Positions 6,910-62,666 of a stretch of DNA of 64,000 nt are shown here, piece by piece. The DNA is taken from contig NC_068986.1 of NCBI RefSeq assembly GCF_001194135.2, positions 115,882,216 through 115,946,215 on the forward strand. The letters are read 5' to 3'. The notes below the pieces were generated by a model. That model was not told the origin of the DNA and did not search any database. It saw only the letters and a program-made list of their open reading frames with translations. The position numbers and the translations under genes are program-made. Origin of the DNA: Octopus bimaculoides. Its lineage: Eukaryota. Every line of letters begins with the position of its first letter. Within the stretch, counting starts at the first letter, position 1.

Positions 6910-7085
6910 CTGCATCATTTTTTGAATCCTCGACATCAAGTTGGTGGCTGGTATTTGTCTCTTTGTGAACTGGTTGTGTTTCTAAAATGACAGAATTTCT
7001 TGAACTGTGATGGACTGGTGGGGTGATTGTACAGTTCTGAGACCGATTCATCACTGACATTTCGATATATTCCTCAGAATCACTG
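6910..7085 (-). CDS. PCNX: Pecanex coding exon 3 (SSDSEEYIEMSVMNRSQNCTITPPVHHSSRNSVILETQPVHKETNTSHQLDVEDSKNDA)
   Basis: Long pyrimidine tract, tandem TAG/CAG acceptor with phase-2 entry matching the exon 2 exit, and donor CAG|GTTAGA (phase 1). Homology is not recognisable here because this region is low-complexity and divergent. Confidence 0.7.
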
Positions 7086-9585
7086 CTAGACAGGGACCAG
7101 TAGGTACACGCAACAGAAACAGGGAAAAAAAAAGGGAGAAGCAGTTGTAGAAATAACAAATATCAGAGGTAGGACAGTAGCATCATCATCATTAACATCA
7201 ACAACATTATTACTGTCATCATAATCCACATTTATTTGTTAATTAGCTCCAGATCCAATGTAAACTGTGATCAAACACAATCCATTTATGAGCATCCCAC
7301 CTTTTATTCAGATACTGTATCTAAGAGTTACATTATCCAATGTAACCTTCTTTTTTATAAGATGGTAGCAGAGGTGTGATTTGAGAGAAATTAAGCAGCT
7401 ATTTCTAACAGGTCAAGCAACGACATAGTCTGATTGACTCCATCATTTTCATTTATGCCATTCTGATAATGTCAACTGCTGAAACAATTTGAATGGAAGT
7501 GAACTCCTGACAAGACAACAACCATTGCCCCGCTCAGTAATAAAGCCCAAATCACTGTTTGTCAGATGAGATCTAAGTCTCCCTGCAAGGGAAAAAGTGT
7601 TAATGATTGGAAAGGGAGGAGACAAATTGCAATGCTTGTATGCCTTAGCTCATAAGATTGACTTTAGATTAACCCTTTCGTTACTGACCCGGCTGAAACT
7701 GGCTCTGGTCTTGTAGTACAAATGTCTTGTTTTCATAAAATCTGAATTAAAATCTTCCATCAAACCTCAGTCACAATTTATGTTCCTAACATCAACTTAA
7801 TTATAACTAAGTTATTTTTACTAAATTCTTTGTTAACATCATCATCATCATTTAACGTCTGCTTTCCATGCTGGCATGAGTTGGATGATTTGACTGAGGA
7901 TTGGTGAAACCAGATGGCTACACAAGGCTCCAATCTGGTCTGGCAGAGTTTCTACAGCTGGATGCCCTTCCTAACACCAATATTAACAATAATTGGAAGA
8001 AACACAGAGCATCTCAAAAGGGTTAAACAACACCACCACCATCATCATCATCATCATCATAATCACATCAACACATCACACATCTATTACTGCTAACAAT
8101 GTGGGTTTTAGCCATTAACAGAACATCATCTGTCTCCTCAATACTTTGAATGTGTCTGTTGCTGGGTAACCCAGTAGCAGAATCTTAAAGGTAATTTAAA
8201 AGGCTATTTCAATACACTCAAAACAACGGCAGGGCATACTCATAATTATTTCCAGAGTTTCTAAAACTGGCAGAGGGCAGGAAGGATTTTATCCCCAGTC
8301 TGGAGACCTGTGTAATCAAGGGCTGGCTGGGTGGTGGCATTAAACCAAAGAATGGAATAAATTTACCAATCAAGAAGAGTTATCATCCATTCCATAAACT
8401 CCCACACAGTTCCTGTCGACTTAATTCCACAGTCAAGACTCAGAATTACTCAATGTTATAGTAGTCCTGCACTGAGATTGAACCCAGAACCACATGAATG
8501 CAAAAGCAAACTTCTTAGCCACAGGGCCATGCCAACAGCCACGAAGTCTGTGGTCAGTGAGTAAATATTTGAACTAACAAAACAAATCTAATCACACAGA
8601 GCAACTTAGAGACATTAGAATTCGTTTGAAGTGGATGATTTCATGCAATGTTCACTATCACAGAGAAATCATCCGAGGATTGAGGACATTCAATGAAAAA
8701 TGTCTGAGCCTCCAGACCATTTTTAGAAACAATAGTTGCATGGTTATGGATGGTCATGTGGCATGTCAAAGGATCACTGAAGGTTGTCATAAAACTATTG
8801 ATGTGTCTCTGGCCATAATATGGAAAATATTGTATTTGATGGCATGTAAGATGCACTTATCTTTTATCCAAATCATCATCATCAGCAGCATTAAATGTCT
8901 GTTTTCTATGTTAGCATGCGTTGGAATGGTTTGACTGGAATTGGCAAGACCAGGAGCTACCCCAGGCTCCAATGTCTGTTTTAGCATGGGTTCTATGGCT
9001 GGATGCCCTTCCAAAAGCCAGTCACTTTCTTGGTTGCTTTTTACATGGCACCAGCACAAGTTCTTTTTATGTGGCACCATCATCGACAGTGTCACCAGGT
9101 GTGTTTTGCAAGATAAAAATCCCTAGAAATGTACAGTCCAGGTCCTATGTGCAAAGTTGGGTTTAGAAGGTCAAGTGACCACATAGAGATAACCTTCAGT
9201 GACTTCAAAGGATTTCTTTATACCCCTATTTGCATATAGAGTATATATCAATTCATGTGTGTTGTATAGAGCTTATGAAGGTGGTCTCATACACAAACAC
9301 CATCAACCCCTGAACATTACTGCCTCAAGTCCATGGACACATTATGGCCGGCTACTTGGTTTCCATGACATGTAAGTGACCAAGATCACAACATTCTCCA
9401 TTGAACAGGACACCAGTCCATCGCAGGGTTAAGATAAAATGAAGTGTTTTATTCAAGAATACAATGCACTACCTGGTCTGGGAATTGAAACCACAATCTT
9501 GCGATCGTGAATGCAACACCCTAACCACAAGGCCACATGCCTTCACAGACACAACACTGCACTAAAACATAACCAAAAGTCAAAC

Positions 9586-59545: not shown

Positions 59546-61363
59546 CTGGTACTGCAAGAATGTTGGGCATTTGGGTCAGTGATTTTAAACTGCATAAAAA
59601 ATGAAGCTCCAGCTAGGTAAATGTAAATAAATAAGATAAAAAAAACACTGTAAACACACTCATGCACTAGTACACACTCACACACACACACACATGCACA
59701 CGTATATATTTGTAAAATACATAGTTAAACACAATAGCAACAAAAACAACAACGACAACAACAGCAGCAGCAGCAGTAATAGCTGCAACACTGAACAGTT
59801 TTTAACACTTCAAATGAAATCAAAGCCTTTTACGAAACTTTCAGCACCCCTCTTTCCTTTTCCTCCTCCTTCTCCTCCTCCCCATACCTGTCTTCCAGTG
59901 CTTTAACTGCTAAACTCATCCCCCCCTCTCTCTCTCGCTCTCTCTGCTGCTCCTCTCATCAAGGTGGGCCACCTTCTCAGCTGAAGGAAAGAACTTCCTT
60001 ATAGACAATCTTTGAATTTTCTTTCATCGCATAGGAGAGAGAGAGAAGTAAGCATACACACACATCACAACATAACTCAGCCGTGTTTGTAGAAAGAGTA
60101 AGCCTTACCTTGAAGCTGTGTAGGTTTTGTAATTTGGTGTATGTTAAAAGAAAAATCTAGTACAACTATACATACATTTTACGCATATAAATGTATATCT
60201 TTATAATCGCACACAAAAACTAAATTAAAATAAAAACTAAATTAAAAAGAGAAAATATATATTCCATCGTATATATAATATATATATATTCCCTTACACA
60301 CACGTGTGTGTGTAAGATATCTATCTATCTATCTATCTATATACTTATAGACACCATTATACATATATATTTATATATATACTACATATAAAAAAAAATT
60401 TCTATTCATTCTTCACTATTATTTTTCTCAAGTAGACAAAAAGAAAAAACGTACTTGGCAGACTCTCTCTCTCTCTCTCATTCACACACACACACACACA
60501 CACACACACACACACACACACAACTCATACACTCACACACACAACACCTCAAGTGTTGCAAGAATGCTTAATAACTGGGTCGATTTCTACCACTTCAGTA
60601 AATCTTGCAAAAACTTCAGACAAGAAATTCACCTGCTTCCCGACTCTTACTGCTGTTACTACTACCACCATAGCAACTGTAGTAGTAGTAGTAGCAGTAG
60701 TCGTAGAGGCAGCAGGAGCATTAACAAAAACATTTGCATCAAGTCTACTACAAATAATAATAATAATAACAACAACATTATTGGCCTCATCCGCACCTTC
60801 GCTGAAAATAAAGATATTATAACAAAGAGACTATCTTGCCAATTGTTGCCTAACCTGACCATCACCCCGAACTCCAAGAGCTACCATCATCAGCTGCAAC
60901 GAAGGGGAGGTGGTGGAGGTGGGAAACGGAGACCCCTTCAGTTGAGTGCGACCCCACAATATCGATGTGCTTGTGGCCGTGTTTGTCTTCGTCATATGCT
61001 GAGGAAGAGAGGGAAAACGAGGACGCCGTTGCTCTTTGAGAGGCGACTGCTTCAACACAGTCGCTTTGTAAGACAAGCACCAGTGCTGAAGGGGACGTCT
61101 CTTGGTATTTAGCAGGCATTCATTTGACAACAGGTGCCTGCAAACTGTCCAAATTCATTAAAACAATAAAAAAAGCAATACCCCCTCTCCCCCACCTCAT
61201 TATTTTTCTTTCCATCTAATGGTCACACANNNNNNNNNNCATCATTATTTTCTTTCCATCTAATGGTCACACACACACACACACACACAACGCACACACA
61301 GCACACATTGCATTCTGTTGTTTATATCCATATTGCAGTGTTTTGAATTTCTGAGAGCATGTA

Positions 61364-62666
61364 ATGCCAAGTGCTGCAACAACCAGCAACTGGACATTGG
61401 TCAACACTTTTCTAAGTGTGACCTTAACTAACATTAACACACTCTCCCCAACTGACTCATTCACTGCTCAATCCTTTTTCACACAAAACAACAACAGCTG
61501 TTGCGAAGATACAAATAATATTAGAAGTAGTAGTAGTAGTGTTAGTAGTACTAGTTGTCCAGTTTCTGCTCACACCTGTGGTCAATGCCCTAACAAAAGT
61601 GGTGCTGGTTGGGGACAAGTCTGGCTCAGACTGTGTCCAAAGAATCTATTGCCACAGCCGAACGTGTGCAATTGGCTGACCGGTTCCATGGAAACTGGCA
61701 CACGAACTGGGAGTAGCAATGACAAACAGGTAAACAAGCCGATCTATCATCATCATCAACATCAAGATGAAGGGAACACGGATGGTGACAGTAGAGGAGG
61801 AGAGGAAGACGGGAGGAATAAGTATGGTGGTCGTAAAGATTCCAGTGGCTACTTCAGTGGTGCACTGAGAGGCTGTACAGGACAGACTAACAACAGTAGT
61901 GGCAGTGGTGTGTCTGCCAGTGGCACGGAAGATGACTCTGATGTAGAACATCCTCCTCATCATCATCATCATCCTCAAGTGTTATACTCACACTCCATGT
62001 CAACCAATCAAGGTCACCCCCAACCTCCCTCACAACAACCAACCAGGTCGAGCTCCATGTTGACGGCCCTGTACGACTACGAGCCGAGCAGGATTGACGA
62101 ACTGAAACTGCATCGGGGAGAACAGGTGGAACTGTTGTCGAAAGACACCGAGTCGGGGGATGATGGCTGGTGGACTGGTCGAGTCAATAACCTTGTTGGG
62201 GTGTTTCCATCTGAATTTGTCACAGACAAAAAAATCTCTGCTGACGGTCCACCCGAGATTGATTTCTCAGAATTGAAATTGGAGGATATAATTGGTGTTG
62301 GCGGTTTTGGGAAGGTGTATCGGGGTACCTGGAAGCAGGAGGAAGTTGCTGTGAAGTTGGCTCGTCAAGATCCTGATGAGCCTGTCAATGAAAGGATGGA
62401 GAATGTCCACCAGGAGGCCAAACTATTCTGGCTCCTTAACCATAAAAACATTGCTGCCCTGAAGGGTGTCTGTCTCAAGGAACCTAACTTATGCCTCATC
62501 ATGGAGTATGCAGCTGGTGGCTCACTCAATCGAGTCTTAAGTGGTGGCCGACGCATTCCACCTGATATTTTGTTGGACTGGGCCAGACAGATTGCACAAG
62601 GAATGCAGTATTTACATGAGGATGCACCTCTGTCTCTCATACATCGGGATCTTAAATCCAGCAACA
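61364..62666 (+). CDS. MAP3K9/10/11: Mixed-lineage kinase first coding exon: low-complexity N-terminus, SH3 domain (~62057-62221), kinase subdomains I-VIb (~62273-62666). Start codon uncertain (61364, 61688 or 61997)
   Basis: Motifs ALYDYE...GDDGWWTG...GVFPS (MLK-type SH3), [56 protein letters not shown] and HRDLKSSN. Phase-1 donor AACA|GTGAGT at 62667. Candidate acceptor tattgcag| ends at 61338. Confidence 0.95.

Follow-up and report, generated by a model that had tools for sequence, protein, structure and literature searches.

A head-to-head pecanex-MLK gene pair in Octopus bimaculoides, probably descended from a compact bidirectional-promoter arrangement

Conserved microsyntenic gene pairs in 5′-5′ arrangement with short spacers are a described class, known as CAMPs (Irimia et al. 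2012, PMC3514665). A stretch of 64,000 nt from Octopus bimaculoides NC_068986.1, referred to as the window and used for all coordinates given here, contains the 5′ end of a pecanex gene on the minus strand and, diverging from it, the 5′ end of a mixed lineage kinase (MLK) gene on the plus strand. As in the CAMPs, the two genes are unrelated, and they are adjacent and divergent in both protostome and deuterostome phyla. The CAMP criteria found in pecanex-MLK are adjacency in both protostomes and deuterostomes and a conserved divergent orientation without an intervening gene, and both the pair and the class combine mostly short spacers with this constancy of orientation. The window itself has a spacer of 38.7 kb, close to the 41 kb that PMC3514665 gives as the human average for CAMPs and well outside its under-1-kb class. 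Co-expression is one of the co-regulation criteria that the paper applies.

Two other described systems offer partial parallels. Pairs with a bidirectional promoter, of which HSP60/HSP10 is an example (Adachi and Lieber 2002, as cited in PMC3514665), are resembled by the head-to-head pecanex-MLK arrangement with a CpG-undepleted spacer of about 1 kb that is seen in Lottia, Araneus, and several metagenome contigs. However, the coding starts in the window are 38.7 kb apart and on present evidence lie outside the under-1-kb definition. Genomic regulatory blocks, in which a developmental gene is linked to bystander genes, likewise display a long-lasting linkage that is explained by cis-regulatory constraint. 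In contrast, neither pecanex nor MLK encodes a developmental transcription factor, the comparison across phyla yielded no conserved non-coding elements, and the compact spacer proposed for the ancestor is unlike a gene desert.

Members of the same two families are also immediate neighbors in mammals, where PCNX3-MAP3K11, PCNX1-MAP3K9, and PCNX2-MAP3K21 constitute three paralogous copies after the vertebrate genome duplications, as opposed to the single pair of the window. The order in cattle is given as EHBP1L1, KCNK7, MAP3K11, PCNX3, SIPA1, RELA (PMC12523860), that of a human 14q24 deletion as MED6, TTC9, MAP3K9, PCNX1, SIPA1L1 (PMC10751923), and KCNK1, MAP3K21, and PCNX2 are placed together at 1q42 (PMC11892930); the MLK3 start codon is put about 3 kb from the adjacent PCNXL3 (PMC5464859). 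These printed orders agree with the neighborhoods that the original prediction for this locus had given for the three human pairs, with SIPA1-family genes beyond PCNX and KCNK genes beyond two of the MLKs. The human pairs are presumably also divergent, as it had stated, and within the analysis a vertebrate-like metagenome contig (L073, described below) shows that orientation.

The minus-strand gene is represented in the window by three exons. Exon 1 (22527-22679, minus strand) opens with the ATG at 22679, comprises 51 codons, ends in phase 0 at a GTAAGT donor, and contains the sequence GGWYYD...LTLYL. Exon 2 (9586-9806, minus strand) is 221 nt long and is flanked by the acceptor ttgttgcag and the donor AG/GTTTGA, and exon 3 (6910-7085, minus strand) is followed by a donor GT at 6909-6908, the gene running on past the window. 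The three exons join in frame to yield a spliced product of 183 amino acids (aa), which aligns end to end with P0121, the product of a contig of 976 nt that was assembled from public sequencing data, at 78% identity and gap-free at both junctions. P0121 maps back to precisely the three exon positions; since it bridges both splice junctions, it is read as coming from a related animal's transcript. Exon 1 also matches the family N-terminal exon pattern MGSxxLxILRQGxWASxTGGWxxD...HLYLWLFLL and is 61-76% identical, with 19 invariant columns, to the first exons in Lottia, Capitella, Branchiostoma, and Araneus; in the last three of these, the homologous first exon opens gene models whose products match Pecanex_C (PF05041). 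By these matches the minus-strand gene is identified as the pecanex orthologue, whose Pecanex_C domain and multi-pass membrane region would fall beyond the window. No additional pecanex exon was detected at positions 1-6909.

On the plus strand, coding exon 1 of an MLK-subfamily MAP3K (61364-62666) encodes an SH3 domain preceded by a low-complexity N-terminus and followed by the kinase N-lobe as far as HRDLKSSN, and it ends in phase 1 at the donor A/GTGAGT. The SH3 domain (62063-62224, plus strand; aa 234-287) is recognized by Pfam SH3_1 at aa 234-283 (E = 1.7e-11), and its top match among solved structures is the SH3 domain of MLK3, at about 64 bits. The kinase N-lobe (62273-62665, plus strand; aa 304-434) starts directly afterward, at aa 304, and its best solved relatives in a phmmer comparison with PDB chains are human MAP3K9 (204.8 bits) and MLK4 (173.1 bits); kinases outside MLK1-4 scored lower in the same run (TAK1, 86; ZAK, 78; DLK, 74; RAF, 60 bits). 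The named best matches from database searches are all MAP3K9/10/11/21 or invertebrate MLKs, and placement of an SH3 domain directly N-terminal of the kinase is the architecture of MLK1-4. On bit scores and domain order, the kinase is assigned to the MLK1-4 group (MAP3K9/10/11/21; Drosophila slipper). No MLK exon 2 was detected at 62667-64000, and the leucine zippers and CRIB region lie outside the window.

The choice of start codon can be examined with P0003, a protein of 503 aa encoded by a 2,058-nt contig from public sequencing data, which is 77% identical across the SH3 domain and kinase, continues uninterrupted through the remaining kinase, and is considered the product of a spliced transcript from a related animal. 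Its first residues are MPSTATSD where the window MLK has MPSAATTS, and the two have the motif TGSMET in common; these matching N-terminal residues support 61364 as the start codon. The N-terminal extension itself (61364-62060) is a low-complexity sequence of 230 aa with runs of His, Ser, and Asn, and it is missing from non-cephalopod homologues.

The two coding starts are separated by a 38.7-kb spacer (22680-61363) containing transposon fragments and ten assembly gaps (2,548 N), the divergent genes being 38,685 bp apart from ATG to ATG. At least 25% of the spacer recurs elsewhere inside the same 64 kb. All stop-free segments of 58 aa or longer between 22.8 and 61.3 kb, 194 in number, were scanned with Pfam, which returned RVT_1, DDE_3, a PHD/C1 finger inside the reverse-transcriptase open reading frame (ORF), and three chance-level matches; no tRNAs were found in the spacer, and the sole Rfam family found there was a 28S rRNA fragment. 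In a tblastx comparison with all 81 fetched loci, the spacer matched nothing but translated microsatellites and one mariner-like sequence. At the sensitivity of Pfam for segments of 58 aa or more, an intervening gene is rejected; genes with short exons and non-coding RNAs lie outside that sensitivity. The original prediction is borne out on each of these structural points: the pecanex ATG at 22679, the strands, and the separation of about 38.7 kb are correct to the base; the limits that it drew at 6910 and 62666 coincide with the last base of pecanex exon 3 and the end of MLK exon 1; its view that no other recognizable gene lies between the two agrees with scans that returned transposon, repeat, and 28S pieces only; and the kinase belongs with MLK1-4 as it had supposed.

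A search with the pecanex N-terminus retrieved only seven proteins, none from a named species, and the synteny survey was therefore begun from MLK proteins. The genomic surroundings of MLKs from named species were examined with flanks of up to 10 kb, and distances in those species are given from ATG to ATG or from ATG to gene model. Head-to-head pecanex and MLK genes were found in Lottia gigantea (984 bp between starts, with the pecanex ATG at 9016 and the MLK model from 10001), Araneus ventricosus (1.15 kb), Branchiostoma lanceolatum (2.7 kb), and Capitella teleta (3.8 kb). By tblastn, pecanex exon 1 and MLK exon 1 lie on opposite strands in divergent orientation in all four named species and in eight metagenome loci. 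In the loci of the four species, both first exons end at conserved positions, that of MLK after HRDLKSSN; what is modeled in Lottia and Capitella as a small ORF between the genes is in fact the first exon of pecanex. The pair was not seen within the 10-kb flank in Bombyx or in one ENA contig.

The metagenome sample was obtained by scanning JGI contigs for pecanex exon 1, which gave 70 animal-derived loci. In 8 of the 70, MLK exon 1 lies upstream on the opposite strand at a spacing of 0.8-2.6 kb, the ATG-to-ATG spacing being about 0.8 kb in two of them (L012 and L015). The MLK of three paired loci is closest to that of Capitella (75% identity), that of another is closest to arthropod MLKs (64%), and that of L073 is 72% identical to a shark MAP3K9-like protein and 68% identical to fish MAP3K11. 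Two further loci, L065 (1682-1918, 85-246) and L066 (2-232), are divergent and paired, and an additional intron, absent from every named bilaterian examined, interrupts the glycine loop of their MLK; their hosts could be an early-branching animal. Elsewhere in the sample, 12 loci (L050, L035, L051, and nine more) have a distinct pecanex exon 1 in common (MAGHVLVILQQGIWASATGG...), and in L050 the 9.1 kb upstream of this exon is without an MLK. The pair may be broken or stretched in the host lineage of L050.

Judged by gene order and orientation, the original prediction that the divergent pecanex-MLK pair predates the protostome-deuterostome split holds, as the head-to-head arrangement in Lottia, Capitella, Araneus, and Branchiostoma attests, and the pair would have been inherited from the bilaterian ancestor. 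Its presence in the window likewise agrees with the claim that it survived the reshuffling of coleoid genomes, the lineage being described as strongly reorganized in PMC9023564.

The base composition of the locus bears on how the pair may be held together. The window is AT-rich (GC about 0.39) and strongly depleted in CpG, with a median observed/expected ratio (o/e) of 0.31. Against this background, a CpG-undepleted block at 19800-24800 (o/e 0.7-1.37) spans pecanex exon 1 and is likely to be an unmethylated promoter region. A second such block, of unique sequence, resides in the middle of the spacer at 32400-36200 (o/e 0.7-1.14) and contains a 574-N gap; no Pfam ORF, Rfam family, or copy elsewhere in the window was found for it, and it could be a distal MLK promoter, a 5′ or non-coding exon, the promoter of a long non-coding RNA, or an enhancer. 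Rfam matches on the 32-36 kb block were discarded as sub-threshold hits to low-complexity microRNA (miRNA) models. No block comparable to these two was found at the MLK start codon. In other animals the short spacers have a CpG o/e of 0.82-0.87, as compared with locus averages of 0.43 in Lottia, 0.53 in amphioxus, and 0.65 in Araneus.

These short spacers with retained CpG, in compact genomes where the starts are about 1-4 kb apart, point to an ancestral bidirectional promoter, and the genes of the window are probably an old head-to-head pecanex-MLK pair that had such a promoter and whose spacer was later stretched by repeats. In the ancestral state, one short unmethylated region would have carried both core promoters, such that a breakpoint between the genes would harm one or both of them. 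Damage of this kind could alone be enough to prevent separation, even if the two proteins had no functional connection. At the octopus locus, insertions of retrotransposons, DNA transposons, and elements resembling short interspersed elements would have pushed the coding starts 38.7 kb apart, with CpG-undepleted sequence staying at the pecanex end and a further block in mid-spacer (32-36 kb). Transcription of MLK may still begin far upstream, nearer pecanex, and pass through a long 5′ intron. A polypyrimidine-AG site resembling a splice acceptor (ttgttgtttatatccatattgcag) occurs 26 nt 5′ of the MLK start codon, within 61310-61363, and this site, in a place without CpG enrichment, hints at an upstream non-coding MLK exon; together with the lack of a CpG block at the MLK ATG, it would fit a distant upstream MLK start. 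Were the MLK transcript to begin far upstream, the two promoters would be much closer than 38.7 kb.

Several observations weigh against this proposal. Promoter sharing is deduced from distance and CpG content only, and CpG content carries no weight in Capitella, where o/e is 0.93 over the whole locus. Bidirectional promoters are defined by transcription starts less than about 1 kb apart; measured between ATGs, the spacing is about 0.8 kb in L012 and L015, 984 bp in Lottia, and 1.15 kb in Araneus, as opposed to 38.7 kb in the window. Tens of kb presumably also separate the partners of human PCNX1-MAP3K9 and PCNX2-MAP3K21, so that the pair persists at loci that may have lost a strict bidirectional promoter. 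In addition, the pair is broken in the louse Menopon, where the upstream neighbors of MLK are a SAM_4/DUF5577 gene and an alpha-actinin gene, and in the shrimp Halocaridina, where genes for a ribosomal protein and a methyltransferase take that place; the constraint on adjacency is thus not absolute. MLK was not seen in the upstream stretch of 11 metagenome loci having 4-10 kb of such sequence, and no pecanex exon was found within the 10-kb flank of Anabarilius MAP3K11, cod MAP3K21, or cod MAP3K9.

A serious rival to an ancestral bidirectional promoter, though on balance a doubtful one, is passive retention, whereby the pair is old and was never selected as a unit, a spacer of 1-4 kb being so small a target for breakpoints that slow lineages kept the arrangement and fast ones lost it. 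The short spacers in every compact genome examined and the loss of the pair in two pancrustaceans are what such a process would leave, and the searched literature reports no functional link between the two genes. When the spacers were compared between phyla for conserved non-coding sequence, as the original prediction had suggested, blastn returned only 11-14-mers at chance level. However, the window pair has survived a repeat-rich spacer of 38.7 kb, which is a large breakpoint target, in a strongly reorganized lineage; the pair also survives in three mammalian paralogous copies, and separate lineages, namely molluscs, an annelid, a chelicerate, amphioxus, and mammals, have each retained it. 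According to PMC9023564, the cephalopod genome is largely reorganized yet retains 275 metazoan microsyntenies, which tend to co-expression. This tendency, like the deep conservation and fixed orientation of the pair, would suit the co-regulated functional unit proposed by the original prediction, in which enhancers or a regulatory landscape are shared because the products, an endoplasmic reticulum (ER)-resident pecanex acting in the Notch pathway and an MLK acting in the JNK pathway, work together; the unique CpG-undepleted block in mid-spacer could be a shared element. Such a unit seems unlikely, given that the pair is dispensable in louse and shrimp and that no paper in the searched literature names both "pecanex" and "mixed lineage kinase." It is presumably dispensable in Drosophila as well, where the two genes are unlinked and both pathways work, and MAP3K10 is assumed to have no pecanex neighbor. 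The more specific proposal that shared elements hold together two genes whose products serve one process, for instance by relaying ER/Notch status to JNK, with 32.4-36.2 kb being the shared element or the real MLK promoter, appears quite improbable.

The remaining alternative, that the neighborhood was created by a scaffolding error across one of the ten spacer gaps, draws on the state of the assembly. There are 14 N runs in the window, none of which touches an exon; four are in pecanex intron 1, and the ten in the spacer amount to 2,548 N of 38,684 intergenic bases, the largest being 726 N. Gap lengths in the assembly are estimates only, but at this size and total an ordinary gene hidden in the gaps is unlikely. 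At two 10-N gaps (11591-11600 and 61230-61239), the flanking sequence is duplicated on both sides (52 nt and about 30 nt, respectively), which marks them as unmerged contig overlaps with nothing missing and both joins continuous. The gaps at 12008 and 34999 sit within TA repeats, and for the remaining sized gaps the sequence alone cannot prove continuity, so that eight of the ten spacer gaps are without demonstrable continuity. In the pecanex intron, P0121 joins exon 1 straight to exon 2, and no constitutive exon is therefore concealed in the intron-1 gaps. A scaffold misjoin, which the original prediction had named as a result that would overturn it, is strongly argued against by the same neighbor in the same orientation in the loci of four other species: a random error would have to recreate both features as they occur in Lottia, Capitella, Araneus, Branchiostoma, and mammals, at a chance of about 1 in tens of thousands. 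Thus, an assembly artifact is scarcely credible as the origin of the pair.

Neither gene is named in the searched text and supplements of the synteny papers Schmidbaur 2022, Robert 2022, and Davila Lopez 2010, and pecanex-MLK is a new, or at least not visibly reported, case of conserved 5′-5′ pairs. Hundreds of such pairs have been described, so this one is no new category and would not surprise a specialist. Its value is as a clean and checkable two-gene neighborhood, with one copy in invertebrates, three in mammals, and losses in at least two pancrustaceans. The spread of spacers among the lineages that retain it, from less than 1 kb to nearly 39 kb, constitutes a natural experiment on whether promoter architecture, shared enhancers, or chance keeps the genes together. 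The case also flags a possible, unstudied signaling link between pecanex and MLK/JNK.

The repeat content of the spacer includes several recognizable elements. A reverse-transcriptase ORF fragment with a PHD-like finger, derived from a retrotransposon, was identified by Pfam at 26797-27588 (minus strand), as was a second reverse-transcriptase fragment at 30735-31028 (plus strand); a fragment of a mariner/Tc1-like DDE transposase, found by both Pfam and tblastx, adjoins a gap at 40734-41048 (minus strand). One retrotransposon has left its 3′ part twice in inverted orientation, at 26696-27078 and 28129-28511 (383 nt, 89% complementary), and both copies adjoin a gap. A diverged 28S (large-subunit) rRNA fragment lies at 57013-57640 (minus strand), about 4 kb 5′ of the MLK start codon; it matches positions 675-1449 of the Rfam model LSU_rRNA_eukarya at 110 bits and is probably a pseudogene piece derived from ribosomal DNA. 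Nearby, an inverted repeat of 143 nt with an 85-nt loop (56118-56488; 92% complementary) gave a sub-threshold match to a plant miRNA model and is probably a hairpin resembling a miniature inverted-repeat transposable element.

Other genes recur near MLK. The SAM_4/DUF5577 gene that adjoins MLK in Menopon (L006 1-9379) is found in Gadus morhua (L010 20380-20975) about 10 kb downstream of MAP3K9 exon 1. The human genes ACTN1-4 presumably share their chromosome regions with the four MLK genes. For one of them there is a printed record, ACTN1 being listed in the human 14q24 deletion in PMC10751923. The occurrence of SAM_4/DUF5577 and alpha-actinin genes near MLK suggests a wider old linkage group.

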